Of a stretch of DNA of 64,000 nucleotides, positions 8,114-58,420 are shown one piece after another; the first letter of the stretch is position 1; the number at the start of each line of letters is the position of its first letter. The position numbers and the translations under genes are program-made. Source of the DNA: Glycera tridactyla (taxonomy: Eukaryota). The stretch lies in the NCBI GenBank assembly GCA_965644265.1, contig OZ286473.1, forward strand, positions 81,592,001 to 81,656,000, read 5' to 3'. The notes beneath the pieces are model-generated. The model worked only from the letters and a program-made list of their open reading frames with translations, did no database searches and had not been told where the DNA came from.

Positions 8114-8302
8114 TTATCCATTTCCAGGAGCTGATGGCAAGGAATAATATATCCACCAGCCGACTTTAAAGATGAGGAAACTTATAGGAAATCCTTTACG
8201 GGAGAATTTGTCTACTTTCTCAGCTCGATGGATCGCCATAGGATCGACAGCCTTCGGTGGTTTTTTGCTCTTCGCTCCTCCCGTGTTCTCTACAACGTTC
8301 AG
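8114..8302 (-). CDS. Alternative terminal exon H (distal loop + M4 + C-tail), most distal
   Basis: Acceptor tctcactttcgttgcag, phase 0. LNVVENTGGAKSKKPPKAVDPMAIHRAEKVDKFSRKGFPISFLIFKVGWWIYYSLPSAPGNG*. Confidence 0.9.
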   Translation of the reverse strand: MNVVENTGGAKSKKPPKAVDPMAIHRAEKVDKFSRKGFPISFLIFKVGWWIYYSLPSAPGNG

Positions 8303-10754
8303 CTGCAACGAAAGTGAGACGGCAGTGAGTGGGTGTCAGGGAGAGCACTGCACAAATTGTGTTCTTTTTTGGCTGGGAGAGCACTGCATCACAATGCGCC
8401 TGCGTTTGGATGAATTCTGTGGGAGAGATAGAGCAAGCGCAGATAACGCTAAAGCGACCGTTTGTTTTGTGGTGTTTAGTGAGCTGGCGTCGTCCGTGCC
8501 TTCTCCTCTTGAACTCCCGTGCTGGGCTCCTAGCGAGATTGGTAGAGTGGTTGATAATTGCGGCAATCGCGCAGCAGAAACAGGTTTCAAACCTCTCAGA
8601 ATTCCGTGAAAATATGTCTAAAATTTGGATGAAGTTGAGCCTGAATTAATGGGAATGCCTCTATGTTGGTTCATCTTCCCTTAGATAGTATCTTTCATTT
8701 TGAGTAATTTGAGAAAGAACAGTTTTTTTGGTTGTTTTGCATTGTTGGGATTATCTATCAAAAGTACAAATTGGCTTGACTTTCATAGCCACTGTATACT
8801 TGTGTAGATAAATCAACAAATCTCTGAGCGCATGAATTCGTTTCTTTAAATTACAGCACTGGACTTCTCTGGGACATGACATCCCAAATTATTGTAAGCA
8901 TGGCAAATAATGCCAGTAATGCTTAGATAATCATAAAAGAGAATTAAAAAATTCCACATCTTCACGGAATTTAGAATGGAGTGGAAAATACACACCGACC
9001 TCCAGAAAGCATATAGAGACAGATGTGGAAGAAATTGAATGTATAATTGCAAAACACCAAATGTAACAATAAATATGGACAAGGTTAGTATATATTGGTT
9101 CATCATGCAAGTTATAATACTTGGAATAAAATATGGTGCAAAGTATGAAAGGTGTTGTCTGCTACAGGGGTGCACTACCATTCTAGGAAAAGCAAATATA
9201 TACTACAAGTTTAGGGCATACTTCTCTCCCAAGTTGGGGATTTCTCCTTACTGTGAAATATCGATACCTTTGACTAAAGGGATCTGGAGCCTAATGAGTC
9301 CCTTATCAACATCTCGCAATACCACTGATATAATTTGTTATAGAGGACCACGAGTGTCAATGTATATTGACAGGAATTGTAGATAAAACATGCAAGGTCT
9401 TGATAAGACAAAAGAGACAATTACCAACATACCCTGTAAACAAACAGACATTTGAATTGCTGTAGAGGTGATCCTAATAAATTCCTACATTGCCAAACAG
9501 TATAGACTCAACAATTTGTAGATTCGTGGCTAGTCCCTTTTAACTACTCTTTGATCCATATGGAAGCATATGATACATATGGTGCATTTTCCTATAGTTC
9601 ATGTGAACATTGAGTCAGGTATTCTTAGACAGATAAAGACAAAAAGCCCATGATGAGGTGATCAATTAATGGAATGGAGTTCATGCTAAAACTGCCAAAT
9701 ATGAAGAGACAATCAAAAGTCCGATGTCTGATAATTTCATGAAAATAATTTCATGAAATAATATCAGAGGAATCCCCAATCTGAGTATCCGTACAGGAGA
9801 TTCAGGATAGGTAACCCAGGTAAATAAAGGTACCATCGGATACATCCCACGTGTACTCTCAATGACCAGATACATTTGAGACGACACGGGGAGGACTTCT
9901 TGTCTTTATGTCACACCTGGATCAGAAAACATTTACATCGCAGGAATTCAAGGCGTTTCTCACGTGAATGCATGTGGCAGGCATGTTTCAAGCGGCATTG
10001 ACTGGTCATCACACATGATGTGAGATTAAATTTAAGGACCAGTCAATACGAAGCCTTATCACCCATATGGTGTACTGCACATAATATCTCATGCCTGTAT
10101 ATATCACATGGATAGCTACAAGAGTTGAATAAAGGTGCATACATTCCATATAGAAATGACATCTTATTCAGGTTTTGTTATAGAAAGCCGTGATCACAAC
10201 AAATTTGTTCAGTCATAAATGTCCATAATAATGCTTCGGTACTTATACAGGTGCATATTGGGTCAGAGAGACGATTAACAGTACTCAATCAATAACTGTT
10301 CTCAAGACACAAACACACACTCTCCAATACACAATCATTCGTGCACACTCATTAGTAGTAAATGTGATATGCTGATATGATTCGCCCTCTTCCAACTGGT
10401 GGTAGAGGTATTGTGTTGAGGTACCTGAGTGCATTCTATATTCATCATCACCCTATTTGCGCTCTAGAATCTTCATTTCCATGGAGCAAAACTTGTCCAC
10501 AAAGACCACCGATCGTCATTTGATTGTCATTCATGATAAGATGGTTAGGTATTTCAGCAAATAATATATATATATCTCCTTTTCCAGTATACTATTTATC
10601 ATTAATGTTTTGGAAAATGGTTCTTATACACTGGTGGTCTTTATAGCAGGTTTGAGTGCATATTCTAGATTGGATTGTATATATTCCCCATGGAAATGCA
10701 ACAGGCACATGCTTAATGAAATCGCTGAGGAAGCCGCGCGATCTCGCTAGATAA

Positions 10755-12215
10755 ATCAGAGCGCAAAGCAGTATACTCGTTTCTCAGGATGAATTATCAC
10801 AGATCACAAGCTTTCGCCCTCGGATGAATGTTCAGACCAACATGGCCCTAGATTTTGCATCCTCTTAGGCAACTGTTGAGCCCCCAAGCACCGATCTAAC
10901 AATGCCCCTACAATCAATAGTCATCCACGTTACATCCCATGAATGTCTGTATTTCACTGGTTGAAGCCAGCTTGGATTCCATAGCACCCACTCTGCTGCT
11001 TCAACCTATCATACCATCTTCAAATACAAACGGGTTAATGAAACATATTCTCGTAAATCAACAGAGTGAATTCCGTATCATTTCTTGCCGAGCGACAATG
11101 GGAATATATTGATTGAGTGTTTCCAATTAACTGCGATTGCGTCTCCTTTTGAAGACTGGTTTTGCTATAAAACTGGCAATTGGAAGGCAGGCCTATGTGC
11201 TGCTTATTGGGATGACTTTCTTGTCGTTGATGAGTGGTCAACAGAGCGACATCTACCGATCTTGATCCACCACGACGGAAATACACGAATGACACCGGAA
11301 ACCCCCGAGAATGTGAGAATCGACTTGAGCCCTCCCCGCGACACGATTATGTCTCAAAGTCCCGCTCAGTAACAAAATGTGAAAATCACAATCACATTCT
11401 ACTTCTCTCGTCATCATAGAAATGTGGAATGAATCAAAGACGGTAATATTTTGATTGGTGTACTATTGGAGCCCAAAGTTCCGAAATGAAGGCCCTTTGC
11501 TTTGATTATTTCGAGAAAAAAACGGGTTCGAACCAAACGGAGAATAACAACTTCTCCTTTCATTGTATCATCACCTGAAGTGTAATGAATTACCAGTCGT
11601 GGTGAATTCCAACTGCTACCGATATTATTCAATTTCCTTACTGAAACCAATCTTCAAAGCATCCCTGTAACCCACATATGTGATATCTTCAGGAAGTATG
11701 TCCGGTCATTCAATCGCGCTGCCTTTGAACAAAGTCAAGATATACTCGAACTTGTCTATGATGACTTTTCACGATTTCAGGAAATGGACTCTATAGACAG
11801 GTAAATGCTGTTGGCAGGTGGATATCATGTAGAAGCGGTCTCCATAGCAGGTTCGACTGTATCTAAGGATATGCATCGCGTCATGTATGGCAAGACACCT
11901 GCCCAATAATAAGTTGATATTCAAGGCAATATCACAATACCTAGAATATCGATATCTTTATTATTGAACAAATGTCTTGCCATGGAAGAAACAAATAAGA
12001 GGAACGCCATTATTCGCGCGAAACAATATACAAGTCTGGCACAAAATGATTCAAGTCCCACAAAATGGAGAAAAGGCGAAATAAAACTTAGCATATTAGA
12101 TTTATTTCTCATTGAATACGTACAAGTGGGGGTGTACAAAAAGGGTATAAAGAATCTGTGGGGAACAATGACAATGAACAACAGACCAGCCTATACACCT
12201 TGTGTCTCGATATAA
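10755..12215 (+). pseudogene. Stop-depleted decayed reading frame (pseudogene or transposon relic, family unknown)
   Basis: One + frame joins track ORFs 11085-11372 and 11964-12215 and an untracked segment RGEFQLLPILFNFLTETNLQSIPVTHICDIFRKYVRSFNRAAFEQSQDILELVYDDFSRFQEMDSIDR. I count 11 internal stops in about 486 codons. Confidence 0.35.
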
Positions 12216-12722
12216 AATGTCTCGAAATCAAACTCGGTAATCTGAATTCGATTTATGTGCCCCCAGATGAATACTCAAAAAGAAGCACATTTGAATAAGA
12301 GGAGCACTTCTGTGAACAGCGACTATTTCACCTCCTATAACATCAGCTGACAACAGACAACAGGCGTCATAACTCGAATACATTTAAGGATCTGTTCTCT
12401 GTTAGAACAGAGCCACACGTACTAACGGCATTCAAAAATATCCAAAAACTGTACTAGAAACAGAACATTTCACCCTTCTCTAAGGACGAGATATAATTTA
12501 TACAATAACACTGTCTCATATATTGGAACTCCCAAACCGAATCAGGATATGCAAGGGTGGGAACACAAGCAACATGAATTCAGAATGTCAAACATAGCTT
12601 GGATCATGGGCAAAGTAGAGCCAATCGTACATTTTGCATGATATGTATAAGGCAGATGGGGTGTAATGAAGAAAAATGTGGAAATAATTTCCTCATTTTT
12701 TTATCTTGGGAAGGTGGAACTG

Positions 12723-12774
12723 GAGAGAGAGAGCGAGAGAGAGAGAGAGAGAGTGAGAGAGAGAGAGTGAGAGA
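12723..12774. repeat. (GA)n microsatellite next to an assembly gap
   Basis: Direct reading. Confidence 0.95.
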
Positions 12775-15700
12775 TACNNNNNNNNNNNNNNNNNNNNNNN
12801 NNNNNNNNNNNNNNNNNNNNNNNNNNNNNNNNNNNNNNNNNNNNNNNNNNNNNNNNNNNNNNNNNNNNNNNNNNNNNNNNNNNNNNNNNNNNNNNNNNNN
12901 NNNNNNNNNNNNNNNNNNNNNNNNNNNNNNNNNNNNNATATAGCGTAGGATTCAGAGTCGGAGAAGGAGAGAGATACGAGCCCAGAAAGAAACAGAGACA
13001 GACATCATCCGAGACATTTCGAAAACATCGTATATGGCACAGAAATGATATCGAAGCAAACTATATATGGGGGAGTTTTATCACCATGGAGTGCTGGAGC
13101 AGAAACAGGTTGTCATCGCTGCCCATGTGTGAATGTGTGCAGAGAATGTGCTCATATGTGTGAATTAAGTGAGATGATTCTCAGCACATTATAAGTAGAA
13201 AGATGGATAATAGATACATAGAGACATAGATGGTTAGAGACATAAATAGATATAGACATAGAAAGACAGATAGATGGTTAAAGATGTAGACAAAGAAGGT
13301 CATCTAGAGTGATAGAGATGGAGAGATTGGCTGATAGAGGGATAGNNNNNNNNNNNNNNNNNNNNNNNNNNNNNNNNNNNNNNNNNNNNNNNNNNNNNNN
13401 NNNNNNNNNNNNNNNNNNNNNNNNNNNNNNNNNNNNNNNNNNNNNNNNNNNNNNNNNNNNNNNNNNNNNNNNNNNNNNNNNNNNNNNNNNNNNNNNNNNN
13501 NNNNNNNNNNNNNNNNNNNNNNNNNNNNNNNNNNNNNNNNNNNNNNNNNNNNNNNNNNNNNNNNNNNNNNNNNNNNNNNNNNNNNNNNNNNNNNNNNNNN
13601 NNNNNNNNNNNNNNNNNNNNNNNNNNNNNNNNNNNNNNNNNNNNNNNNNNNNNNNNNNNNNNNNNNNNNNNNNNNNNNNNNNNNNNNNNNNNNNNNNNNN
13701 NNNNNNNNNNNNNNNNNNAAGAGACAGAGAGCCATGTCCACCCCACTATTGTATCATTGTTTTTCGTCATGTTAGTTATGTCATGTCTATTAAACATAAA
13801 CCAATGCATGCTAGTTGGTGACTGTATCTGTTTTTCTGATCATACACCTGAAGCTGTTAGCTTCTTCCAGATATACACTTTCTGGCCTTGGGTGTAATTA
13901 GATGTAACATTCTGAGATTGAAGAAATACCATATTCATTTTTCAAGAACATATTCACTGATTTATGTTTGCTATGTTGCACTTTCAATTACATTACATTG
14001 TTATTCTATTCCCTCACACTGTCACTTGTTTGCTAAAAATATGTATGTCATGCCTTAACATGTCTATTCGAACAAACAAGATATTTTATTTGGAATGTAA
14101 TGGGAATTGATTCGGTCACTGGCGTTTAATTATTCTCAATTGGATTCTTGTTGGTACAGTTTGTAAGATAAGTACAGTATATTTCATCGATCACCTCCTG
14201 TAACAGTAGTAAACAACTGACACTTTTTAATGAGAAACTTTAACAAAATAATCAATTGTTTTTTAAATGATTCAACAAGATACTAATCAAACATTTTATC
14301 TCGAAATTGTTGGCGCTAATTGTGAAAATGTCGTGAAAGTGGAATATAACTGAGCTCACCAGTCTCCCTCCATCAAGATCATTCTGTTATGAAACCGAAT
14401 GTGAATTTTCATCTATTATTTTCATGTTTCGAATCATTTTATAAAGTATTGCTCTGGATAACATGGATAATCAATGACGACTTTGCGTGGCTTTGAACAT
14501 TTAGAAGCCATGGTGGAGGCAAGTTTGGAGAAGAATTCTATTTTGGAGGTCATATCTCGTTGGAAGGTTTATGAATAAGAAATAGGTTTCTCCAAAGAAT
14601 TGTTCACTAATTCTTCTCTCAAATCACCCACTCCTCTGATATCATCACAATTCCTGTGGGAGATTCCAACCAGTCCAGTTATTGAGCGAATGTATAGACC
14701 GTTAGCCATACCCAAATAACGGTAGAATTCTGTTAAACTAGCCTTACATTCTACGAATTGATGAGCGATGGAGTAAAACATAAGTTAAAATTACTGTACT
14801 GTACGATGCGGTGAGAAACACCATGATTTACTCCGTACAAGGAGGACATAAACAAGTTTATAATACAGCTAAATTAACAACGATTTCTCAGACTCAACCA
14901 TAACACCTTTACTCTGAAGGATTCATGATGATCTATTCATGCATGTCTGTTTACATATATACAATTTTTGATTGTTATTACAACTGTTGTGTCTCAGTCA
15001 GTCAGGTAATCAGCCTCCCTGTATGTATGTATTTGTGAGTTCCTTTTGTGTTTGTGTGTGCATGCGCGTGTGTGTACGTGTGCATGTGAACGTGTGTGTG
15101 CCTTTGGGTGTGGGTATGTCCCAACCGCATAGATTCTAACGCATTGCAGAATCTTTTTCAGTGTAGAGAAGTATATATTCTAGTATGTACATGCGATTGT
15201 GTGTCTTTTTGTATATCTTAATATGTAGTTGTGTATGTGTTCTCTGGCATGTGGGTATACTCAAACATGGATTTTGCTGAGATATGTCTTGATAGTTCCC
15301 TCATACAAACAGGAAGAAGCATCGAGAATGATCTTCCGACCATACTATGAATACAAGACAGTGTTGTACGAAGTTTCATGTGTGTCACAAACCATTTAAC
15401 ATTATTCAACACTGCACATTGCTAGGCATACCACGAATCGATAAGGCATTAAGTGACTGAATATCATCAATCTCAACAACTACACCATCTCCATCAATGC
15501 AAATAAATAGGCTGAGCACGACCAAACCGATTTTGTGATGCACCGATCAATTACAATGGAATTCATGACGAGAGTATCGAAAACCTCCATGGAAAAACAT
15601 ACAACAATAATAACATATCTGTGATAGACATGGCTGCGTTTGGCCTGCGTGCACGCATGAAGAATGTACTGAGATGCTGGTGTATTCTTTAGCAATTGGG

Positions 15701-18700
15701 TGGTATTTCCCCTAATGCTTGAAGTGAAACGGGAGGCGTATTTAGAGAGTGGTGGAATCAGGTATGGTGGCGGTAACTGGTGATGCAACAGGCGCGGGTT
15801 GTTGAAAATTAGACGCCGTTCCGCATGGTAATGTGTGACGATATTTCGCCACGTACCCGATACCACCAATCTCGTTCTACCTCCTGCACCGTTCAAGCAA
15901 TCGGTGAAATACAATCAGTCGACTGAAATTCTTGAAAATTCTTGAAAATACACAAACCAATATGTGTCGACAATTGAGGCATCCACTTCAATCAATTTCA
16001 AGCTTTGTGTTGATCGTATGATCCAGGCCTGGAGACAGACATAGTATATACAAAATAGACCCAAAGCTGAGGTGCTTGAAATCATCCAGCTAATTTTGAT
16101 TTTGTTTGTGGCTTTCGTTGAAATTGATCCTCTTATAATGAAACCTACATCGAGTTTGTGTGATATTTTGATTCAGTAAGGGTCGCATTTCAATTATTAT
16201 CACCACCTCCTAGTCTATACAGTGATATCTAATGACAAAAGCTCCTAACAACCAACAGCAGTTCATTGTTTAAATCTCCTCTCCCCCACAAATAGTAGTT
16301 CACATCATTGGATGAATGATTGGATGGATGAATGAGAACAAGCTAGATGATTAGATGAGAATTGTAGCCGATACTATTCCACGGAACTAGACGGAAACGC
16401 GGAATGCGGGCAAAACAAGTAAATCGACACAGAGCGAACCGCGCAAGACATGTCTGTTTCATGGCAAATACCCCCACTGTTATTGTCCAACTCCTCATTG
16501 TTGTGCCATCTACCAGTCCCCAACCTAAGTCACTTCCCTTCAAAGTTCCGTGAAATAGTAAAGGCTATGTGTACATAAAAACACAAATCCCAGCCAATGC
16601 TCGCCCACTTGAGAATTTAGATAACATTATATTTCATCATTACCTGACCTCGACGAGATTGTAACAGAATATTCACTCTTTTTCATCTCAAAATAATCAG
16701 GTCACCCCTGTATTTGAATGACTGAGATGGACCCGATGCAGTCAACGTTTGTTCACATACCCACTGTGATGAGGTCTTCACATATAAAAGTTAGATAATT
16801 GATAACTGGAGGCCATAATTGTGAGGGTCAGGTAGATTTGTCCTAGTTCACTGCGGGCAAATTATGAGTGCGGTGCCCCATTTTTGAGTGACAAAGAGGC
16901 AATTGGCTTCTCCCCAAATTAAACACCTTCCTCCATTCTGTATTCATTATCTGAAACGATTGTCCCCTTTTCTACCGTATCAGATAATAAAACACATTTC
17001 ACAACTCATGAGTAATCATTACCACCTCTACCTACTTATATATCATATCAAGTCACCCCAACTTGAAGGTCACTACAACACTGACCTTGAACCAAGGTTG
17101 GTTACATCAAAAATACATAACAATAACCGACAGTGAAGTCCACGTAAGCACGTTTGTGGTATCTGTAGACAGTAATATAAACGCATAGAAACGCTGCCAC
17201 TCGATAGGCGACTGCAGCAGCATTCTTGTATGGAATATGTATAGGCGAACACCGAAGCACATGGACTCATAGGGATAGCATCATTGATAACTTACATCAA
17301 ATTACATTACAAGTAATATATAAATCATCTTTTTCTGCAGGTTTGCTGAGATGTCTTATCGCCACAGTTGACCCATCACACTGCTCCAAATTCATGATTA
17401 CAGTCAAAATCTCCTTACATTCGAATTTGGTCGAATCTCTGTGGGATATCGAAGAGGTTTTCTCAAGCCATGAATAGACACTGACCAAGGGTATCATTGA
17501 AATATAAAAGTCATGTAACCTAATGCCCATGATTATAGTTCTTGCTATTTTTCTTATAGAAAATGCAACTTTGAAAATTCAAAATGACCCAAAGGTGGTG
17601 AGCATGTAGAAATGATGATTGAGCAACAAAACTTGCTTGCATATCAATGGTGAGAATGTTCAACTATGAGTTTCAGATACACTAACACTAACAAGTGTGA
17701 CTTATACAGACTTCACAGTGTTTTGCTGTTGGTTGATGTAGGAGGTGATATTCGAATGCTTTCTATAATTAAGATTGTAAGTTTTGATCGATGACGGACA
17801 TGGAGCAGTGTCCTAGGTGTGACAAAGACAATTATGTGAAAGATGGCTCAAACCCAGTACAGAAGATATGTAAATCCTCATGTCATCCTTGGAATTAGTG
17901 TATGCATGTATTCATATAACAAACATTGCCTCATAAATGCAGTATGAACCCTGGTCCAAAAAGTCCAACGACAACAAAAATACTATTGCTGAAGCGATCA
18001 AGCAAACAATCCTGATCACACCCAGTTAGAGAGGTGCATTCCTCATAATTCAATTTTGAATTGAGATTGGGAAATCAAGCTTGAATCAATTTTGGCTGTG
18101 AAATGTATATCAGTCATGTATTTCAGGTGATTTATATATGAATTCTTGCTCCATATTTAATGCACTTCACTGTTATACAGGTGACCATTTTTTTAATCGA
18201 GGCATGCAGATTATCACTCGAACTGCACTTCATTCTGTGCCACTAAAGTCTATACTTGAATGGATGAATCAGATATCATACAGAGACCAATGATGGTAGA
18301 TAATATATACCCTCCAGCATAACCCAAACTATGAATTTTTAAAGAAAGTAAAGTGATGATCATATACACTATCTAAAATGAGCCACATGAATACACCACA
18401 TGAGGCAAATAATGTTTTCAAAATCATATTCTGCACTGAATAAGTTTGAGCCATCTTTTCAACAATAACTAGGTAGTAGGAAAGGACAGATATATATGTA
18501 CGAATCACTTCTCATATGTCCTATCCCATGTATTCCATAGACACTCACAGCACATAATGTATTTCAGACAATATTATTCACCACTGGCTTGTCTTTGAAA
18601 TAAACACACTCCTCTCTTCTCAAAATTTCCTGCTTTCAAATTTCTAGAACCATGATATATATGGGTGGAGATCATCCTATAGTATGTGATCACCCAACAA

Positions 18701-21700: not shown

Positions 21701-23825
21701 CAAACACCAATCATTCAATTGTATGGATTTTCTCAAGAATGAAAGCCAAGTGAAACGCATCCAAATTTGATATATGATGTATATTACATTGGCATGGATT
21801 TTTACTGGAATACAAGACAAGCAGCAGTAGTAGAGCCAGCCTCGCTTTGTGGACTGTTGCCCAGGTATAATTTTCTTACTGATTCCCACCAGAGGAGATC
21901 CTCACAGTTTCAAATTTCATCCCACCATTCCCTCTTCCCCAAATTGAAGCACATTGAATTAGTCCCCCACCCTGAGCCCACCCACTGGATCCATTGTGCA
22001 GGCCATAAATGGAAACAGATGGTTTCTGCACATTGCTAAATTAGAAACTATTGCATTCAATGCTGTCCCCCAGTTTCACTATCATTCAAGTGTAATCAGT
22101 TTGGGATTGGTGTCCTCGATTGCTTTGGTACAGCTTCAGCAACTGTGGCTATCAACTCCAATTTGAATTCACTTGAACATGATGCGAAATCGGCCAATTC
22201 TAGCTTCACTGAGTTTGTTCCAGCAGCTGTGATTATCTGCAAAAACGACATAACCGCGAGCACCTATTCCTGATTAGACTACAGAAATACTCTGAGGATA
22301 CCGGCTTACTCCTACTGGGAATGCTGCTACAAAGTGCATGCCTCATATCTTCGAAAACCCGCCAAATGTCATTTACTGTGACAGATCCCATCAGGTGAAC
22401 ACCAGCAAGATTCCTAGAAATCCCAGCATCACATTATTCAATCTCATGAGTGTAGTTTTTCCTGATGTTTCAATAATGCTGATTCAGGGATGACTATTAG
22501 TATATTGGGCACGCGGGACATTGAAATGGATGTTTCACCCTCTTAATCATAGCCATGGATTTTTGTACGCAATAAAAATGTTGATCGTGGGCCAGTACTT
22601 GGCTTACAACATGTTTTTGTTGTTCAAAACTGGCTCAATGCCACATGCAGGCCGTGGACCAAAAATACAACATCGTTGCCAAATCAGATCATGTGAAAAC
22701 CGTCATGTTGCGTGATGGAGAAGAAGGATACCACTTTCACTGACCCATCGCTGATTTAACTATTATCTGATTATTCAGGCAGGGTATCCATATTTCACGA
22801 TCTGTGATGATGGAAGGAAAAATATATAGAGTGCATATATAACCCTATTTTATCTGTTATATGATAGCTGGAGGAAAGAATGATGAAACAAGCGACACAC
22901 TAAGTGACTCCAAATGTGCCCTGATATCAGTAATAATCATTTTNNNNNNNNNNNNNNNNNNNNNNNNNNNNNNNNNNNNNNNNNNNNNNNNNNNNNNNNN
23001 NNNNNNNNNNNNNNNNNNNNNNNNNNNNNNNNNNNNNNNNNNNNNNNNNNNNNNNNNNNNNNNNNNNNNNNNNNNNNNNNNNNNNNNNNNNNNNNNNNNN
23101 NNNNNNNNNNNNGCGATGATTGAAATGATTCGATTACCATTATTATAATCAGAATTAAGTTTAATTAGTTTTGATATCATCATTATCATCATCATCATGA
23201 TTATCATTATTATCATCAATTATCATCATTAGTATTATTAACATTATTTTTGAGCTATGATTTAACAATTTCGAGGACATGTGATGATGGGATTTCGGAG
23301 AAAGCAACTTGTCACTTCTGGCATATGGCGCAAATGCGACTCTGATATATGTTTGTAGCGCCGTCGATTGTGAGATCATAGCAAAACTCTACCAACAATA
23401 TATATTCGCCCGGTATGGCATCTTGGAATAGGATGATCATCTGGAAGCCCACAGCAGCAGCAATGTGTTTCCATAGCTACGTCAGTATTCAGCGATCACG
23501 TGGAATCGTCATGTCAATATACCATATGATGTCACCCAGTCAGTGACGTCACCGTCATCACGAGTGACGCTGTTGCGTCACTGTGATATATGTGTTCAGT
23601 TTGCATTATCAGAAACATCATCAAAATATATCCATCAATGTGAACGTAGTGAAAGCCTCTTGTGATGTTTTCTTTGTAAGAAAATATCCACGGCCTGTGT
23701 GGCGTTAGAAAATATGTCGTGGCAATGATCCAGTGTCAAGAGAGCAAATTCTCAACCACTTTGTGGTGCAACTTAGCACGCGCATTCTGTTGCATCCATT
23801 TTGCAAACGTCAGCAGCACTTGCAG

Positions 23826-24017
23826 TTATCCTTCCCCAGGCGCCGAGGGGAGTGTGTAGAAAACCCAATAGACAACCTTGAAGATGAGAAAGGCAAGTGG
23901 GAATCCCTTGCGGGCGAATTTGTCTACAATTTCAGCTTTATGCTTTCCCTGCGGGTCGACAATCTTTGGTGGTTTCTTACTGCGATGAGCTGATGCCCCA
24001 TTGTCTACAACGTTTAA
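23826..24017 (-). CDS. Alternative terminal exon G (distal loop + M4 + C-tail)
   Basis: Acceptor caattctattgcag, phase 0. LNVVDNGASAHRSKKPPKIVDPQGKHKAEIVDKFARKGFPLAFLIFKVVYWVFYTLPSAPGEG*. Confidence 0.92.
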   Translation of the reverse strand, partial: LNVVDNGASAHRSKKPPKIVDPQGKHKAEIVDKFARKGFPLAFLIFKVVYWVFYTLPSAPGEG

Positions 24018-26397: not shown

Positions 26398-26574
26398 TCA
26401 GTGATCACCACTTGGAACTGTATAGTATATCCAATAGACCACTTTAAAGATAAGGAAAGCAAGTGGAAAAGCCTTCCGGGAAAATTTATCAACTTGCTCT
26501 GCTTTATGCTTCCCAGCCGGATCGACCACTTTGGGTGCTTCTCTATTCCGTGTAGTGGCATTGTTTAAGTTCAT
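26398..26574 (-). CDS. Alternative terminal exon F (distal loop + M4 + C-tail)
   Basis: Acceptor ctctactttgttgcag, phase 0. MNLNNATTRNREAPKVVDPAGKHKAEQVDKFSRKAFPLAFLIFKVVYWIYYTVPSGDH*. Confidence 0.92.
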   Translation of the reverse strand: MNLNNATTRNREAPKVVDPAGKHKAEQVDKFSRKAFPLAFLIFKVVYWIYYTVPSGDH

Positions 26575-42928: not shown

Positions 42929-43120
42929 CTACTCTTCTGATTGACTAGCATGTGTGTCAAAGGAGGGCGAGACAGTGTAGTAGAGCCAGTAGGAAACATT
43001 AAAAAAAAGAAAAGATAGAGGGAAGATTTTGCGAGACGCCTTATCGACATTGGTCGCCTGTTTCTTGCCAGCCGCAATAGTTTTCGGCGCTTTTGGGAGC
43101 TTGACATGATCAGGATCGTG
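42929..43120 (-). CDS. Alternative terminal exon C (distal loop + M4 + C-tail)
   Basis: Acceptor cctatttgtgttttacag, phase 0. HDPDHVKLPKAPKTIAAGKKQATNVDKASRKIFPLSFLFFNVSYWLYYTVSPSFDTHASQSEE*. Confidence 0.9.
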   Translation of the reverse strand, partial: HDPDHVKLPKAPKTIAAGKKQATNVDKASRKIFPLSFLFFNVSYWLYYTVSPSFDTHASQSEE

Positions 43121-43438
43121 CTGTAAAACACAAATAGGATAGGTACTTGGTAACACAGGTAGAACGGTATACACCCTGCCAAGGGTAGAGTGATTTACAC
43201 CCTATAAACTCACGTAGAAGGGGTTACATCCCCCTAATCTTAATTCTAATGATTATCTTTGTATCTATTACCTTGTTAACTGCATTAGAATGATATGCAA
43301 GTCTTAAACTGAGTATATGTCTAATTCTAAAAAACCCTAACCTGAACAATTCCCATGCCAACATCACAAAATTATTTTAGATAGTAGATACGCCCTGGAG
43401 GTACTCCCGTCAGCCTCTCCCTGATAATGGGAGCAGGG

Positions 43439-43624
43439 TTATACCTCCTGAGCCTCATTCTCATTCGAGGATATTGTGTAATACAACCAATACACCACAT
43501 TGAAGAAGAGGAAGCTCAGAGGAAAAGCTTTGCGAGAAGATTTGTCGATGTTGGTTGCTTTTCTCTTGCCAGCAGGATCGACTGTTTTGGGTGCTCTTGG
43601 AAGCTGCACATGATCGGGATCTTG
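43439..43624 (-). CDS. Alternative terminal exon B (distal loop + M4 + C-tail)
   Basis: Acceptor ccttattgtgtttacag, phase 0. QDPDHVQLPRAPKTVDPAGKRKATNIDKSSRKAFPLSFLFFNVVYWLYYTISSNENEAQEV*. Confidence 0.92.
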   Translation of the reverse strand, partial: QDPDHVQLPRAPKTVDPAGKRKATNIDKSSRKAFPLSFLFFNVVYWLYYTISSNENEAQEV

Positions 43625-45011: not shown

Positions 45012-45047
45012 CATCATCATCAGCATCAGCATCAGCATCAGCATCAG

Positions 45048-45079
<32 letters not shown>
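45012..45079. repeat. Compound (AGCATC)n/(ATC)n microsatellite
   Basis: Direct reading. Confidence 0.95.
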
Positions 45080-47748: not shown

Positions 47749-47940
47749 CTACATTCCGTCAGGGCCCGATGTAGGCACAGTGTACATGATCCAGTAGACG
47801 ATGAGGAAGACCAGGAATATTAAGGGGAATATTTTGCGCGCTGCACTATCAACCTGCGCAGCTTTGAGCTTGCCTGCAGGATCGACCACCCGCGGCGCTT
47901 CCGGGCATGCGCGCCCCCTACCATTAGGCACTATATTAAT
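47749..47940 (-). CDS. Alternative terminal exon A (distal M3-M4 loop + M4 + C-tail)
   Basis: Acceptor tcttgcttgcag, phase 0. INIVPNGRGRACPEAPRVVDPAGKLKAAQVDSAARKIFPLIFLVFLIVYWIMYTVPTSGPDGM*. Confidence 0.92.
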   Translation of the reverse strand: MNIVPNGRGRACPEAPRVVDPAGKLKAAQVDSAARKIFPLIFLVFLIVYWIMYTVPTSGPDGM

Positions 47941-50900
47941 CTGCAAGCAAGACATGCAGGGCTACATCAGTCGCCATCTAGCGTTACACGCACATAACTA
48001 CCACCGCCTTTAGAATACAACATGATATCCTCGGAGATTCCACCCAATTACTTCACCATCCTCTCCTGATGGTTGCCAGATGGCATCCAAACAAGATGAG
48101 AATTCAGAAGAGCACTCACATACTTTGCTTGTCCACTAACCCATGGGCCTCAGTTGGCCTATTGAGACGCGCATACAGTGGGCAATTATGGAATCATTAA
48201 GCATATGCCCATTGCGAGGTAAATTTCTGTGGATATGTATACAGACTCGGAAAGGTATGGCCCCTTATAATAATCACGAGTTGTAATCAGGGGTCAAATG
48301 ACCTATAACACTAGATAATCAACTCGCTCATTCATAATCACCCTCATAAATGTGCACAAATTACCTCTGCGATGGTAACCTGTTCAAATTAAATCTATTT
48401 TGCAGCATAAGGACAACTCATTAGGTAATAGGTGTTTATACCTGAATGATACATCTAAGGGTAGTTTCGGTGAATGAACTCGAATGTTGTTGTTCGGGCA
48501 GGATTCTGGTGATAGCCACATATGAATGCTTCCGAATTGAGAGGATCAGGAGTCAGAACCATCGGATAATATATCACAGGATTTGGACCTCTTCGCATGA
48601 AATTTCTGATTAGCGTATTCAAACTGGTTGAATGTCGCCCCATGGTGCTAGATATTTGAAAATGGGCGTTGATTTAAGAAAACTAGTATTCATTTCAAGG
48701 GAAGTAAAACCTTTCTCGGATATCATGTTGGATTTTGACGGAGGCGAGATACATTGAAACGTGTGGTGGGAAACCACCTCCGACAGGAGACCACTTTTTC
48801 GCGGCACAATTTTTTTTGACACAGGCGAAATTTGCCCAAGGTGGATGACCACCGCTTTCGAAATACGGCTTAAAGAAGATACTGAGAATGGTCTCGCACC
48901 ACAGGTTTCACTGTAGTTGAAACTGAGCTCATTGCTTGCTTTCATTCATTATTTGTGCGATATCTTTTCTACGATATAATACCGGCATTAGATTCTAAAT
49001 TCAATACAATATGTACATATCCAGCAAAACGACTCAGAATGAAATGGTCGTAATATTATAATATCACAACAATATTTTTCATATATATCATTTGACAATG
49101 AGGAGACTCCAAACTTTCTTTGCATATGGTAAGAGTCATTACATTTCTGAAATTCTTCTGCCAGTCGTAATCAGCCAACAAGGCATGCCAATACACAGTT
49201 GTGAATATATTTCTGCCACATTAATTGTGGAAAACCTTCCATATTAATCCAAGAAAACAGGGTTGCCGCTGAAAGTTGGAAGATTTCGAGTTTGGTGGTC
49301 GACTACAATATGATATGTTCATCTCTGGCATGAATATGTATCAGGAAAAAACGTGACTGGGTCTGGCTTTCCACGAAGCGGCAGATGATATCAAATTAGG
49401 GTGGTTCAACAGTCTGACTAGGAGTGCATGAAAGCAATACAGACATATCTAAAAAGAGATATCATCTTTCCAATTTCCTTCTACAACAAAGCGAATGAGC
49501 TCAGAGGTTATTGCTAATGCGTGCACATGTCCAAAATTTTACATGATCAGAGATTTCACCTTCTGTCCCTTTCTCCCAAAACTTCGATATCAGAAGTAAA
49601 AAGGCGGAGACGCAAAGAAGCCACAATAATATTTGATTGTGTTGAAGCAGGATTTCGACGAAAGAGAACTGCCGTAAAACGTGGAAAAGGGCCACAATGT
49701 TCAAGTGGAAATCTCTCAATATTAGTTTTGGGATGGCGATTGGGTAGAACATAATCTTGGGCAGAAAAACCTTACGCTCGAAAGGCAACAAGATTCACCC
49801 CCGAAACTATTGCTAAACAATACTATGTAGCACATTTCACTTGAAACAGGGACATGCAAAACGCACACAAGACTAATATATAGTGATTGGAATTCTTCAT
49901 TTGAAATCTGTATCTGAAGCTCAGGAAGAGCCTCAAAATACAGAACAAAAATGAAATTCCAACGATATATTTATCACGGGACAGAAAGTGAACGTCTCTA
50001 TGGTAGCTCTAGGATATATTCCACCATACTAACACCGGTTAAATGAATAAAATATAGGTCTGCACATAGCGATTGGGTTTCAGCATGCACTATTCAAGAC
50101 AATGGGGAGTTTTGAGACATTTATGAGAAAATGAAGTACTTCCTCTGGAAGTACGATGTCGGCGTAATGAAGACCTAATGAAACAAACGTGACATCTAGC
50201 GATGAACTGGAATTGATCAAAGGCGACATCTAGTGTAATTTTCAGCAAAAATTGCATACGCTAGATGTCACTGGTTTGTACGAAACCAAAAAATAATAGA
50301 TGTCATGTTTTACATGAATACCCATCTATCAAAACATTGAGAATTGAATATGAGGCAGAGATCTTGCTTCTATGTTGATCGATGGGCAAGTATTTCTGAA
50401 TTGGGACACGTGGTGATGGTAATATTATTTCAAATTCATTGAGAAATTTTCACAGAAGCTCTAGGACGGGACGGGAAGGAATAGTGGCATGAATGGAATG
50501 ATCTCAAGTACAATTTCCAAAACTTATTTGCAATTTCAACCCATGCAGAGTTAACAGCCTAGATCAAATCTAGCACACAGCCGGGCTGTCTCACTGTTAA
50601 TATTTATTATGACGTCACAGCCAGTTGCTATGAGTTGCTGAGGACAGTTACAATAGGGTCATGCAGAGGGCATCAGATCTCCATAGCAACGACATAATTA
50701 TCATGGCTGCTCTTAGTATATGAATTATGGAAGGATTTAAGTGACACAAGTGAGCTACGTGCTCAATATAGCTCGTCTCGAGACGGGGATTTGTTCACAT
50801 ATCACACAAATCTTCCTCCAGATTAATGGAATGACATTACCTCTTCAGAACTACAAGATATTCTTTAATGGAGGGTGAATTGATCTTGGTTGTGTTGGTA

Positions 50901-51249
50901 ATACCCGATGAACAATTCCAACGAATGTATCTATGCACAACAATCAATTTCACTTTTTTCATGCCCTTTTTTGCGATTCTATTTCACGTGACTGTAAGTC
51001 GGGAATGGCCTTCCAATTGAAAAAAACCCAGTCTAAATCATTGTCACACCAGTTGTTATGTACACATAACTGATAAATATAAAGGTACTGATCATATGAG
51101 AAGCAATGGTAATTACTTTCGACACTGATTCAGCCCCTGGATGTGATCAGACAAACGCATCCACATGCGCTTGTTACTTGTGACGTTGATGAAAGTATAT
51201 GACGCAACCATTGATGATAACGTGATAACGTGACTTAACCTAAAGTTCA

Positions 51250-51463
51250 GATACGTAGTGCTCAACATGCCCTCGGGAATTTCGAGAATCAAGGGAGAAA
51301 TTAAAAGTGAAATCCTCTGTAGGAATAGTTTACCTTAATGCCAATTAGCAATCCCATTGAGACCAAACTTAGAATTAAGATACGTAGCATTCAATATGCC
51401 CTCAGGGATTTCGAGAATCAAGGGACACATCGAAAGTGAAATCCTCTGTAGGAATAGTTCACC
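51250..51463. repeat. Local direct duplication, period 129 bp
   Basis: GATACGTAG...TTCGAGAATCAAGGGA...AAAGTGAAATCCTCTGTAGGAATAGTT repeated from 51250 and 51379. Confidence 0.85.
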
Positions 51464-52610
51464 CCAATTTCAATACCATGCAGTTGACGGAAGACGACAT
51501 AATCACCGTTATCTAACCCATATGGGGTGTAATATTGTGACAGTACTACACAGATATAGGATATATGCTGTGAGCATATTCCATCACATGCAAACATGCA
51601 TTTCACCAGTTAGATCTGGACTACTGCAGGTGCCCCGAGATCAATGGGGGTAGGGGGTAGTGAGGGGTGGATCGCGGGATATATCCTAAAGCGGAAGTAG
51701 TATTACGTCATCAAGGAAGTGACGTCACATGAATAGTAAACAGAAGCAGCGCAATCATCATTATCATCGATCATGAGAATCTTATGAGTATAGGTCCACC
51801 CTGCTGATCCTGTCTACAAGGTAACAGCTCTTGCATGGATTAGTGGCATCCAGAGATCAGAGGTCAGATAAGTCAGACAGGAGGGGATGCATGAAAGAGG
51901 TCAGATATACAGGGTGCGCGCAGTGTATTGGGTAGGTGGACATGCATTCTGTCTGAGTTGCATTGGATCATCTCTATCCACTGATACTACATGGAAAATT
52001 AGAATCATTTTCGCAACTTATTTGGAAACTCAAAATCGTGAAACTTCGAGTATTTCCTACGATTTCGGCTCAATACTTAATTCCGGAGGAATTTCTCCGA
52101 AGGGTCTGTTCTCATATTATCAACATTATCATTTCNNNNNNNNNNNNNNNNNNNNNNNNNNNNNNNNNNNNNNNNNNNNNNNNNNNNNNNNNNNNNNNNN
52201 NNNNNNNNNNNNNNNNNNNNNNNNNNNNNNNNNNNNNNNNNNNNNNNNNNNNNNNNNNNNNNNNNNNNNNNNNNNNNNNNNNNNNNCAATCGATCGATCG
52301 ATCAATCAATCAATCAATCAATCGATGAAACGTTCATACAATCAAATGCCTATAATGCCAATGACCAAGCATACTCAAGGAGCAATTTAAGAAAGGGTAT
52401 CAGGAATAATTTCCACTGCAACTCAGTAAAATGAGTCCTTATATAGGTAGACAATAGAGCAATGGCGCTATAGAAATACGCAAAAGTTGCTGCAACCTGA
52501 AAGATGAAAATCGAATGAGACAGCAAAGAATGCGCAGTGATACAGAGCGGAAATAGAAGAGCAGTTCGCCAGGCGCACAACAGAGCATCATGGGTTGAGA
52601 GACCGACTCC

Positions 52611-52746
52611 AAAACTCATGAGATTACGCAAAAACTCATGAGAGTATTCAAAAACTCGTGAGAGTATTAAAAAACTCATGAGTGTATTCTAGAACTCATG
52701 AGAGTATTAAAAAACTCATGAGTGTATTCAAAAACTCATGAGAGTG
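52611..52746. repeat. 20-bp minisatellite, about 7 copies
   Basis: Unit AAAACTCATGAGAGTATTCA with point variants. No spacers. Confidence 0.9.
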
Positions 52747-52794
52747 TGTCGATCAGCATTGAGGAGAGTGCCAGTCCGAATTCCATAAAGTTGG

Positions 52795-53394
52795 CTGCTT
52801 CTTTGCTTTTTTAACACATCTAGGCTAAATTGAGACGCCCATGAGATCGTCTTGGATGTGTTTTCTTCCAATTGCTTCTGCTCGACATTCCATGCCTGGG
52901 CGTCTCTATATAGCCCATCTGGTCTTAAAGAGACGCCAAACAATCAAACAATCATTTCAATATTGAAACAGAACTCGATAAATGATATTTGAAAGAAATA
53001 CGATCGAATCAGTATCCTTTCATCTGGTCTGTTAATGAGTCATCAGCACCATCTGGGCTAGATTGAGACGTCCACCAATTATCATGAGTGGCTTCATTTG
53101 AGACTTCCCTGGCGGATGATTCTGACTCACCACACAGACCCACATCTTGTGCCAGGTCTCAGACGCTACACAATTAATTTCTTCGACGTTTGCACGTTCT
53201 GTAGAATATGTCTAAATCCCCTTGTAATTTCCAGGAGAGAAAATGATCGCTCTAGAAAGAACAGATAGAACTGCAGAGACTGTTCACTTGGGCAGTGAAT
53301 GATTCCGTCGTTCTTTCATTGTGTTCCACCTGTCCTGTGAACAGTTGGTTGTTCCACGTCTCGTCAGCTCTATCTGGGCTATATTGAGTCGCCC
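52795..53394. repeat. Cluster of four SINE-tail-like motifs, one inverted
   Basis: GGCTAAATTGAGACGCCC (52823), inverted GGGCGTCTCTATATAGCCC (52898-52916), GGCTAGATTGAGACGTCC (53056), GGCTATATTGAGTCGCCC (53377). Confidence 0.6.
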
Positions 53395-53839
53395 GAACAA
53401 TGGGAACGGGTGAAACTACCCGGGAGGCTTTTTTCAGTATCATTGAAAGAAGAATAAATGATATGATAATACTCTCAATGCTCATTGAGTGACAAGGTAC
53501 ATGTTGCCAACCAGTTTGAGCTCTGCGATAGTTTCAGAAATGTTCATGGAATCCGGAGTGACACCGACACAGAAATGGGCAATGGTCTATATGTAGAGTG
53601 GCAAGACTTTCTAGTGGTTATATCTGTTCAGGACAAAATGAAAGATGGAATAGAGGACCTGAAAATTGTTGATAGCTTGAGTGCATGCATGTAGTAGTGA
53701 CATGTGGTTTGTATTTGAGTGACAAAACCCTGTGATATCCACTATTGGATACACCCACCCAACTAGTCCAAAGCCATGCGTATCCGCCTATACATAGCGC
53801 AACGGGAGCATATCTAATTTCGCGCGATCCTACTCCGAA

Positions 53840-53872
53840 GTTGTTGTTGTTGTTGTTGTTGTTGTCGTTGTT
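53840..53872. repeat. (GTT)n microsatellite
   Basis: Direct reading. Confidence 0.9.
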
Positions 53873-54732
53873 CTACTTGACGCGAGCAATGTATAAACTT
53901 CCTATGAGAGACCGCTTGCAATAAAGTCATCTTTTTCGATGATGTATCTCAACTCAGATACGGACCCCTTGTTTACAGCTATTCGAAATTTCATTGTGGA
54001 TTTTGTTGATCAGTTAGACCAGCTGAGAACATGGGATTAAGGGACTAGATTAGCTGGAAGATGCACTGGATGGATTAGAGAGATTAGTAGGGTGAGAGAA
54101 TAACACTCATCCCGTTATGTATCTTATCATAGAGGTGTGTGCAGCAGCATCTTCAGGTTGCCATGGAGATGAAAGTTGTGCTTCAATTTGGGTCAACTGA
54201 AATAGATCATGGATGTAGATGTGATACTATATGGAAATTAGGTGAGTGAGGCGATCGAAATGAAGAAGAAGCAGAGATAGAAAGGGGGATGTACAAATGG
54301 ATGGATGGAAAGATGAGTGGATGGATTTATGGATGAATTAATGGACAGACATACAGACAGACAGAAAGAAACATAGATAGATGGACAGNNNNNNNNNNNN
54401 NNNNNNNNNNNNNNNNNNNNNNNNNNNNNNNNNNNNNNNNNNNNNNNNNNNNNNNNNNNNNNNNNNNNNNNNNNNNNNNNNNNNNNNNNNNNNNNNNNNN
54501 NNNNNNNNNNNNNNNNNNNNNNNNNNNNNNNNNNNNNNNNNNNNNNNNNNNNNNNNNNNNNNNNNNNNNNNNNNNNNNNNNNNNNNNNNNNNNNNNNNNN
54601 NNNNNNNNNNNNNNNNNNNNNNGCTAGATGGATAGTTGAATGGATAGTTGAATAGATAGGGAGATAGACGGAGAGACGAAAAGATAGAGAGATAGATAGA
54701 GAGAGAAAACAAGAGAGATAGATAGAGAGAGA

Positions 54733-54740
<8 letters not shown>

Positions 54741-54771
<31 letters not shown>
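54741..54771. repeat. (AG)n microsatellite within a degenerate GATA/GAGA tract
   Basis: Direct reading. Confidence 0.9.
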
Positions 54772-54777
<6 letters not shown>

Positions 54778-55616
54778 AATGATGAATGGTGGGGTGGGGC
54801 AGGTGGGATAATGTGATTTGTAAGATTTCTGTATTTAGCATTTGATTTCTTGAATCGGCAGTGTTCATCAATCAGTTTTATTCAGTGGTAGGATGGCGAT
54901 AACAATCATTAGGAATGTCTCAATTATTTCGATGCATCAGTCATTTCCATGGCAACCTGAGAGTATGACAGCTGCAAACATGGTTAGTTTGAGGCATGCG
55001 CCATAACAGTGTGACGTATTCGATGACGTCATACTCCAACTTACAGATCGACATCCAGAGCAACATTGTGTGAGGAGATTCCCTTCCTCCGCGTATCCCT
55101 AAAAATCACATACAATCATTTTCAACAAGTCACGCGAATTTCATGGCATATGATACCTGTATTCACTCAGGATAGAATAACACAGGTGTTAGTGAGAAAT
55201 CGAGTGGTTAGTGATTGAAATCGAGTGAGTGAAATCGGAAGAAGAGAGTGTAAAGACACAGGCCTCTTGAGATGCCATGGATCAGGTATATGCGCTCCCC
55301 CTGGTGGTGATTATATGAATCACTCTGAAAAGACGACTCATCAATGTGCTCATACATATATTTTCAGTGTTGTACACACCCTGGAAGTAAGCTGTCCTAA
55401 TCCTGCTATAGTAGTGAGGGACGTTGGTGGATTATGTGTATAAGGAGGGGTAATAGGCATCACATATCTTGAAAGGGATGATGAAACCAATTGAACTTGA
55501 GGTTGTACAAGGGAATACCACATATAAACAATTGGGTGGGCTAACTTAACGTCAGTAAATATCCAGTGTTTTGGGAGATGATATTTTAAGAGAATCTTAT
55601 CCCTATCTCATTTCAG

Positions 55617-55829
55617 TCAAATATCGGGACAAAGACGAAGATGTACCAGGTTGCTATGGATTTTCCAGAAAACCCTAGCAACCTGACACATAGACTTCCA
55701 GTTCCTTGTTATCAATACTTTGCTGAAAGTCATCGGATTGGTATGATAACTTATCGCGGTAAAATACAGGAAGTCATCCAGATAATGGTCGATATTTGCT
55801 TTTAATCCTACTACAATGGCCGCTTCCAC
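55617..55829 (-). mobile_element. Possible reverse-transcriptase relic (DIRS/Ngaro-like HYLDDFL)
   Basis: The short ORF contains IDHYLDDFLYF, resembling the RT YxDD catalytic motif in the HYLDDF context of tyrosine-recombinase retrotransposons. Other RT motifs were not found. Confidence 0.3.
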
Positions 55830-57230
55830 GCTGCGCCCAACGCGTCAGATTTTGGATATATATATAAGCGAATCGAACCAAAACATCCATACTCTCTCAA
55901 GATTATGTCAGATCTCTCCAGATCTAGGACATTATATCAATGATCGGACGTACCACTATGTTTATATCGATGCATTTCAGTGTCTAATGTTCAAAAGTTC
56001 CAGACGGTATCATCGAAAGTTGGTGGTATGATAACTATTCGTTATATGGAGAGGTTGTATGAAATGGTATACCTGCCAATAGAAGACATTGCTTCAAGCG
56101 TGGTAATGAATATTTTTTCTCTGCCATTGCTTTGGCCACCACCTCGGCGACGAGGGTATTCGGATTTGACGAATAGCACCATTATCTAGCACATATTCAA
56201 TCCATTTCGAGAGTAGAAATTGATCCACAAATCTATCATAATTGACCCTAGGTTGTTTGTACCAACGGACAACTACAAGGAATTATGAAAATAGCACTAC
56301 GTGTCATTGGTGACTACAAGCATCTATATATATCCAGGACGGATATTCACCATGATGATGGAATCAGGGTCCTAGGTCCCTTACCATTGCGACTGAGGTG
56401 TTGGCTTCCATGGCATTATTGCAAGATGACATATACGGTGATATTGCAGTCATAATGTAATGACACACGCTGAAAATGGTAAATAACTAACTATTTTTCA
56501 AATTATGTACTCACTGTTTGATCTCATGGATGGTGTGGGTTTAATTCTACTCAAGACAAAGCACACGCAAATCAATGTGAATGACCTTAGATTCTCCATT
56601 CATTGTCTTACATCCCTTGTCAAAAGGTCACCCATTTTGATTCTCTGTGGGCTTGGACTTCAGTAAAAAAAACCTGCAGAGCTTGTCAAGCATCGTAGTG
56701 TAGTCTGAAGGACGAATAAGTTTTGTTGATAGTTGACCTGCAAATTTGAATCTACGCGCCAAAAATGCTAATGTGTAGTAACGCGCTTGAAATATTGTGT
56801 AAACATGTGAAAAATGTATTTATGCCGTACGAGAAATTAATGTGACTGCGAAAAATGTACTTGAAACGATGGTCTCTTTGAAAGAATGGAAAAGAATGAG
56901 AAATAAAATTTGCGGATGTAAAGATAGATTTTTCAAACACATGGATTGCATCGAGAAAATAGGGAAAGAAATTCACAACACCGAAAGTAATTGTCTACGA
57001 GGGCCGGGATGCTAAAAGATCTGATTTTGATAGAATGGAAGCAATAGCTAGTGCCGCGGAGAGATTGGAAGTACTAGAGGACTCCCACAAGTTGTCCACT
57101 GGCGCTGAAAGAGCAGAAATAGAGCAAGCGCCATCTAGAAGTAAACGGTGCAGCGTATAGAGAGTGATTAGCGGCTCTAGGTGGAGCTAGCAGTATGAAT
57201 AAGTATCGCCAGGTGGCGTGACATGTGTAC

Positions 57231-57628
57231 CTGATCCATCTGGTTCTCAGGATCGCCGATGTCTTTTCTGAGCGGCGGTGGGCGACGTACCGGCTTGATC
57301 GTTCGCACCTCCTTACGTGATATCACGTTGACAACTGCGAACTCTAGCAGAGACGCGAACACGAACACCAGGCACATGGACATCCACACATCCATGGCCT
57401 TAATGTAGGAAACACGGGGGAGTGAAGACCGTGCGCCGGTGCTCTGTGTGGTCATAGCTAGCACTGTCAGCAGGCCAAGTGAAACCCTCGCAGGGATCGC
57501 GTCGATGTTAATCCAGAAGGCCACCCACGACAAGATGACAATGAGGATACTTGGTATGTAGACCTGGATTAGAAAGAAACCGATGTCTCGCCGCAGCATA
57601 AAGCGAATCTCCAGGCACGGGAAAGCAC
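57231..57628 (-). CDS. Same channel gene, exon encoding end of loop C, M1, M2, M3 and the proximal M3-M4 loop
   Basis: Acceptor gtttgtttgcag, donor CAG|gtacac, 398 nt, phase 1 to phase 0. Reads [132 protein letters not shown]. The PAR motif before M2 is the established anion-selectivity signature. Confidence 0.97.
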
Positions 57629-58288: not shown

Positions 58289-58420
58289 CTGCAGTATAAT
58301 TCTGCGAGCAGTCATAGAGGATGATATCTTGTAGTGTAAACTGGGGTAGTTGGACACCCTTATCCACGTCCACGGGGGCGTCTAACCACGCAAAATACAT
58401 TGTGTCCATGGTATAACCAA
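58289..58420 (-). CDS. Cys-loop ligand-gated chloride channel subunit (GlyR/GluCl-like), extracellular-domain exon (loop B to loop C)
   Basis: Acceptor ccaatttcag, donor G|gtgagt, phase 1 to phase 1, 132 nt. Reads (F)GYTMDTMYFAWLDAPVDVDKGVQLPQFTLQDIILYDCSQNYTA(G), aligning to the GlyR alpha FGYTMNDLIFEW...LPQF...YCTKHYNTG segment. Not in the ORF track. Confidence 0.95.

Follow-up and report, generated by a model that had tools for sequence, protein, structure and literature searches.

A glycine receptor-like subunit gene of Glycera tridactyla with eight candidate alternative terminal exons for the M4 helix

Introduction

Products of the C. elegans gene unc-49 have a common N-terminus that is joined by splicing to one of three C-termini encoded in tandem, and these subunits can co-assemble (PMC8841521). 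A comparable layout appears in a 64,000-nucleotide stretch of DNA from Glycera tridactyla (assembly GCA_965644265.1, contig OZ286473.1, positions 81,592,001 to 81,656,000 of the forward strand; hereafter the window), which would carry a single pentameric ligand-gated ion channel (pLGIC) gene with a common N-terminal part followed by tandem alternative C-terminal cassettes. Each unc-49 cassette is reported by Bamber et al. (1999) to hold the four transmembrane (TM) helices and a portion of the ligand-binding domain. The two genes differ in that unc-49 has three whole-channel cassettes, whereas the window gene has eight that hold the distal loop, the fourth helix (M4) and the tail only, with the pore common to all. 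The window cassettes thus contain M4 and not M1-M4, and are not complete-channel alternatives of the unc-49 type.

Alternative C-terminal regions on a common ligand-binding domain are also described for the nematode gene avr-14 (gbr-2), which encodes GluCl alpha3A and alpha3B (PMC8841521). As the window gene would, avr-14 encodes an anion-selective pLGIC with alternative C-terminal regions, but it has two variants, in which the whole channel and the intracellular domain are swapped and not M4 alone. Mutually exclusive exons of insect pLGIC genes include GluCl exons 3a/b/c, RDL exons 3 and 6, and nAChR alpha6 exons 3 and 8 (PMC13512814, PMC2064938), and the exon 9 variants of insect GluCl alter the M3-M4 loop, not M4 (PMC12960926). 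As proposed for the window array, a single subunit gene is diversified there by homologous exons that arose in tandem and are alike in phase. In contrast, the insect sets consist of two or three internal exons for the ligand-binding domain or TM2, and none is a terminal M4 array.

In the Drosophila genes lola and mod(mdg4), a common 5' part precedes a tandem series of many 3' terminal exons, all of which carry a stop codon of their own. The window gene is similar in that a common 5' part would be joined to one of many 3' terminal exons, but a TM helix of an ion channel would be exchanged in place of the zinc-finger or FLYWCH DNA-binding modules found in the nuclear proteins, and trans-splicing operates in mod(mdg4). 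Vertebrate GLRA genes contain one M4 exon, and their known splice variants are small cassettes of the loop or of the extracellular domain (ECD). M4 is the outermost, lipid-exposed helix of a pLGIC, and M4 and the tail affect gating, lipid and steroid modulation, folding and surface expression. Full-text literature searches provided no described case of an alternative exon array for M4 (TM4) only in a pLGIC, which is not proof of absence; an initial annotation of the same DNA had likewise known of no pLGIC with an eight-way M4 cassette.

Results

The locus is best explained as one large gene on the minus strand, present here with its 3' half, that encodes an anion-selective, GlyR-like pLGIC subunit. 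Several or all of the eight M4 exons in this gene are likely to be spliced alternatively to one common M1-M3 exon. The M1-M2-M3 exon is present in a single copy at 57231-57632 (minus strand), within an open reading frame (ORF) at 57177-57638 that holds M1, M2 and M3. The segment 57231-57626 matches positions 1-89 of Pfam family PF02932 (Neur_chan_memb) with E = 6.5e-35. The final codon of the exon, CAG, is intact and is followed directly by gtacac, which forms a phase-0 donor with its boundary between 57231 and 57230. The residues Pro-Ala-Arg (PAR) are read directly from this exon ahead of M2, at the cytoplasmic M2 end. The PAR motif is a signature of anion-selective pLGICs.

The pre-M1 exon, with the loop C region, is located at 58284-58424 (minus strand) and was identified from the ORF translation and from tblastn matches with E values down to 4e-18 against P0010. 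It is the last ECD exon and the sole part of the ECD inside the window, the remainder lying beyond base 64000. The GlyR/GluCl-type C-x11-C spacing of loop C is assembled from both exons, with one Cys contributed by the pre-M1 exon and the other by the start of the M1-M3 exon. The two exons are separated by an intron of ~650 nt (57633-58283). At locus L005 of a close relative, the pre-M1 region and M1-M3 form one continuous genomic ORF (L005:9935-10669), and the intron has therefore been gained or lost between close relatives.

A six-frame motif scan gave eight M4 exons across 49 kb, all on the minus strand. Exon A (47749-47940; 63 codons and a stop) has a Leu in the helix core (FLVFLIVYW). Exons B (43439-43624), C (42929-43120) and D (33523-33678) are of the Asn type; exon C starts 318 nt past the exon B stop, and exon D is the shortest and provides the top Pfam match (E = 1.4e-06) and the top GlyR match of the eight. 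Exons E (30006-30179; FLIFKVVYW), F (26398-26574), G (23826-24017) and H (8114-8302) are of the Lys type. Exon F is the only M4 exon that starts with ATG, and exon H is the most distal, 15.5 kb past exon G. An ORF of 145 aa with an ATG start runs antisense across exon H at 8172-8609 (plus strand) and is most likely due to chance.

Every one of the eight exons has a length divisible by 3, an open frame and its own stop codon, and each matches the last ~40 positions of PF02932 (positions ~190-233 of 233). All are preceded by a phase-0 acceptor, which reads TTGCAG in six and TTACAG in two. On the gene strand the motif TT(G/A)CAG occurs 30 times in the 49 kb, and eight of these occurrences fall exactly at the frame-correct starts of the M4 exons, a coincidence far beyond chance. 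The pyrimidine content of the 24 nt ahead of the acceptor AG ranges from 0.54 to 0.79, relative to a background of 0.50, with weak polypyrimidine tracts ahead of exons D (0.54) and G (0.58).

Further pLGIC pieces were sought in the window using tblastn with nine pLGIC homologs as queries, of which seven were about full-length and two were partial ORF calls. Besides the eight M4 exons, the only pLGIC pieces obtained in the window were the pre-M1 and M1-M3 exons. Weak additional matches with E < 1 were led by one with E = 0.065 at 6920-7024, below exon H. Another, with E = 0.17 at 11528-11626, looks like chance; stops appear in one translated frame, which was not confirmed as the frame of the hit. 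A hidden Markov model (HMM) was constructed from the eight copies and compared with all ORFs in the window. It produced exactly eight matches, with E values from 1e-28 to 1e-34, the next having E = 1.6. No decayed M4 copy was detected among the ORFs of the sequenced part of the window with this model. Almost all of the long intronic ORFs merely cross runs of N.

The window contains eight N runs with estimated sizes of 132-373 nt. They are distributed over the intervals M3-A (two), C-D (one), D-E (two) and G-H (three), and the intervals A-B, B-C, E-F and F-G are free of gaps. None touches an exon, the closest being the run at 22944-23112, about 710 nt from exon G. The statement that nothing else lies between the exons applies to sequenced DNA only, and it is the sole claim that the N gaps affect. 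In the intron between the M1-M3 exon and exon A, a tandem repeat with a 20-nt unit is found in about 7-9 copies at 52591-52770, with a consensus close to AAAACTCATGAGAGTATTCA, and adjoins the N gap at 52136-52286.

The architecture agrees with the initial annotation in each of its parts. The single M1-M3 exon with a phase-0 donor at 57230 was recovered on the minus strand, and the motif scan and PF02932 returned the eight segments that had been described as having a phase-0 acceptor, an intact frame, the M4 signature and a stop of their own. The listing of N runs bears out the four intervals said to be free of gaps. The tblastn and HMM searches agree that no second M1-M3 or extracellular exon lies among the M4 exons in the sequenced DNA.

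The closest solved relatives of the predicted protein are glycine receptors, as judged by M1-M3 and M4, most of the ECD being outside the window. The top matches among solved structures are GlyR alpha1/2/3 for both parts, with E~2e-47 for M1-M3 and E~1e-12 for the M4 profile, which aligns to residues 415-449 of GlyR alpha1. The window gene and vertebrate GlyR alpha, its best sequence match, also have in common the PAR motif and the C-x11-C of loop C. Relatives that bear a name are "glycine receptor alpha-like" proteins of the spiralians Helobdella, Paralvinella, Haliotis, Gigantopelta and Macrostomum.

The proportions of synonymous (pS) and non-synonymous (pN) differences were determined by the Nei-Gojobori method for all 28 pairs of M4 exons. 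Values of pS range from 0.60 to 1.03, at or near saturation in 28 of 28 pairs, and pN ranges from 0.17 to 0.43. Identity among the eight exons is 47-68% for nucleotides and 37-77% for protein, and no direct DNA repeats linking the units of the array were found in the window. Because silent sites are saturated and no DNA repeats link the units, the M4 duplications are old. Recent duplication and assembly artefact are excluded by the age and divergence of the copies; mis-assembly had been named beforehand as an outcome that would overturn the proposal.

Conservation along M4 is periodic in the manner of an alpha-helix, with a spectral peak at 100 degrees per residue and an AP index of 3.4 that was reached by 5 of 20,000 shuffles (p = 0.00025). 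The invariant face comprises F39, P40, F43, L44, F46, Y50/W51 and Y54, and the opposite face is variable. The Leu (A), Asn (B-D) or Lys (E-H) that separates the classes occupies a semi-buried position near the invariant face. Conservation of one face is what would be expected if all eight helices dock on a common M1/M3 surface.

Related loci were compared over the DNA within reach of each M1-M3 match. In the protein collections, which do not include the window's own genome, the best M1-M3 match is 93% identical. The close database matches are genomic ORF calls that continue past the same donor, in which ...DQ is followed directly by GT. At five loci (L002, L003, L006, L007 and L009), one M1-M3 exon with this donor is followed 5-7 kb on by two tandem M4 exons. 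L002 and L003 are from GCA_022702875.1 and GCA_022702835.1, respectively, and L003 repeats the L002 pair and is not independent. L008 and L011 have two M1-M3-like ORFs ahead of a tandem pair of M4 exons. The contigs of L009 (353 kb) and L011 (913 kb) are free of gaps, and long-read contigs are among those that carry the tandem pairs. One M4 exon is found in the reachable DNA of L004 and of L005, and none within 10 kb at L010. The M4 exons within the tandem pairs of L002, L003, L006, L007 and L009 are separated by 200-420 nt, and the M4 exons of the relatives all follow a CAG acceptor in phase 0 (...LQ at the end of the upstream exon, INIVENG... at the start of the M4 exon). A candidate called gene past the M4 exon of L004 was rejected as a low-complexity ORF with a GTG start, and no suitable called gene was available beyond the M4 pairs.

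The paired M4 exons of L006 and L007, which come from closely related taxa, are 99.5% and 98.4% identical between the two loci, compared with 83-93% for the flanking introns. The differences amount to one non-synonymous and three synonymous changes in 369 nt, a pattern which indicates that constraint on both M4 exons has been strong in recent time. The 417-nt spacer of the M4 pair (L006:17110-17526) is 92.7% identical to that of L007, compared with 83-87% for the other flanking intron, and carries AATAAA at +253 in L006. This conserved spacer may be a 3' untranslated region or a splicing regulatory region.

Taken together, saturated pS with low pN, the lack of decayed copies, the conserved helical face and the constrained pairs in relatives strongly indicate that each M4 exon is functional and kept by purifying selection. 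A maximum-likelihood tree was calculated from the M4 peptides, which provide only ~60 residues. Exons B and C group with P0166/P0167, exon D with P0154 and exon F with P0151/P0158, all from other species, and exon A is placed near L004/P0159. The placement of several window exons with those of other species, and not with each other, suggests that several M4 exon types already existed before these species separated.

The M1-M3 exon is tandemly doubled in more distant relatives, at L008:9893-13615 and L011:9968-11577, which suggests mutually exclusive M1-M3 exons in those species. P0001, P0008 and other database matches with multiple matching stretches are gene models with two or three M1-M3 copies in series; these are probably alternative exons that were annotated as consecutive. 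The annotated models of the close family members P0036 (Macrostomum lignano) and P0032 (Helobdella robusta) end without M4, which fits far-downstream M4 exons missed by gene predictors.

Discussion

An exon that encodes M4 only has one simple way to function, namely splicing to shared upstream exons. In the proposed mechanism, the phase-0 donor between 57231 and 57230 would be joined by the spliceosome to one of the eight phase-0 acceptors. Each acceptor would open a terminal exon for ~25 residues at the end of the M3-M4 loop, for M4 and for a short tail on the extracellular side, closed by a stop. One gene could then provide up to eight subunits that are identical in the ligand-binding domain and M1-M3 pore but differ in their M4 helices. 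Their M4 face for packing on M1/M3 would be invariant, and the lipid face, the Leu/Asn/Lys position and the tail after M4 would differ among the copies. For closely spaced exons such as B and C, the choice would be between 3' splice sites, probably with a common downstream 3' end, and widely spaced M4 exons may own separate poly(A) sites. From general knowledge of pLGICs, the isoforms may differ in lipid sensitivity, gating, assembly or trafficking, and pentamers might be formed from them in combination. We infer the actual splicing to each M4 exon, and the mutual exclusivity of the exons, from the genomic sequence.

Several observations weigh against alternative splicing of the whole array. 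A spliced M3-M4 junction of this type appears in 0 of the 394 proteins checked, and searches of protein databases with HMMER (representative sequences) and with M1-M3 and M4 profiles returned only genomic ORF calls reading through the splice sites. The relatives have M4 pairs and no larger arrays in the reachable 10 kb. Deep nodes of the M4 tree are weakly supported, and peptides from short contigs could come from paralogous genes. N gaps interrupt the intervals M3-A, C-D, D-E and G-H, and their sizes are estimates. Finally, no AATAAA or ATTAAA occurs within 1.5 kb after exon A, B or C. Abalone RefSeq isoforms (up to X9) were considered as a precedent and rejected, being products of a paralog with one common M4 and an M3-M4 loop unlike that of the window gene.

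Two of the earlier proposals are retained in part. That one gene makes up to eight subunits is favored by the architecture and by selection on each exon, but not by the protein survey. Of the syntenic array that was to be sought in related genomes, the tandem arrangement, the phase and the acceptor were found as pairs, and the eight-exon array was not seen within 10 kb.

Two others were not supported. A canonical poly(A) hexamer is located 383-1255 nt past the stop of exons D, E, F, G and H. The 318-nt B-C spacer contains no canonical hexamer, nor does the spacer of the L002 pair. Eight separate poly(A) sites, as had been anticipated, are thus unsupported; since A, B and C are without a nearby hexamer and B and C are so close together, some M4 exons probably share 3' ends instead of each having one. 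Hexamers in the array number 31 in sense and 52 in antisense. A T>A skew in the sense strand accounts for most of this difference, which is therefore weak evidence. The comparison with the Dscam mechanism was addressed by searching for docking and selector pairing as ungapped Watson-Crick/GU runs that pair the 600 nt past the donor with the 400 nt ahead of an M4 acceptor, for all eight acceptors. The longest runs are 11-13 nt, no better than the shuffled controls, which average 11-13 nt and reach 14-18 nt, and no 8-mer common to at least four of the M4 upstream regions was found. Docking and selector elements of the Dscam type are accordingly not supported by this simple ungapped test.

The alternative that survives best, although it is unlikely, accepts one gene but has only some M4 exons spliced today (for example A and one or two more), the rest being recently silenced and undecayed. 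The M4 pairs in reach of the relatives would suit such a subset, as would the weak polypyrimidine tracts of D and G, the loss of the conserved Asp-Pro in exon C and the unusual MAIH and GWW residues of exon H. Set against this, all eight copies are intact and none is decayed despite saturated silent sites, and the TT(G/A)CAG acceptor and the invariant helical face are kept in all eight. The silencing of several copies in recent time with a lesion in none would be a coincidence.

It is far less probable that the window holds several tandem pLGIC genes, the 5' exons of the downstream ones lying within N gaps or being absent from the assembled sequence. The N gaps in M3-A, C-D, D-E and G-H, with their estimated sizes, leave some room for this. 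However, in both gap-free stretches, A-B-C and E-F-G, three M4 exons follow one another without an intervening M1-M3 or ECD piece, and gaps estimated at no more than a few hundred nucleotides compare poorly with the 5' part of the gene, which occupies well over 6 kb inside the window. The gap-free contigs of relatives also repeat the layout of one M1-M3 exon and two M4 exons.

Scarcely any weight is given to a different use of the M4 exons, either as M4-only micro-proteins expressed from internal promoters or by trans-splicing. Nothing direct speaks in its favor, apart from the point that cis-splicing is itself deduced from the DNA. Every exon starts at a conserved phase-0 acceptor that fits the phase-0 donor, only exon F provides an ATG start, and the conserved helix face implies packing on M1/M3. 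Lastly, spurious copies made from haplotigs or from collapsed or expanded repeats, which a draft assembly with eight N gaps might invite, are effectively refuted by the divergence of the copies, where artefacts would be near-identical, by the lack of direct DNA repeats among the units and by the tandem M4 exons in independent assemblies of relatives.

Alternative splicing of several or all M4 exons to the common M1-M3 exon is thus the preferred reading. A more extensive version of it is conceivable but is held only tentatively: all eight M4 exons would be used in a cell-type-specific manner and, together with alternative upstream ECD exons, would give dozens to hundreds of isoforms; M4 would be a swappable module for lipid sensing and gating tuning in combinatorial pentamers; and M4 duplication would be ancient in the clade. 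The new aspect of the locus would be the application of tandem alternative terminal exons to a single TM helix of a neurotransmitter receptor.

For annotation, M4 exons located 5-50 kb downstream are easily missed, and several database models of relatives are without M4. If the proposed splicing is true, the eight M4 variants on an identical background would constitute a natural mutagenesis series for the role of M4 and its key face. Animals could then diversify inhibitory receptors by the swap of a single TM helix and not by duplication of a whole gene. If all eight exons are used, an inhibitory neurotransmitter receptor would be diversified by a strategy similar to that of Dscam.

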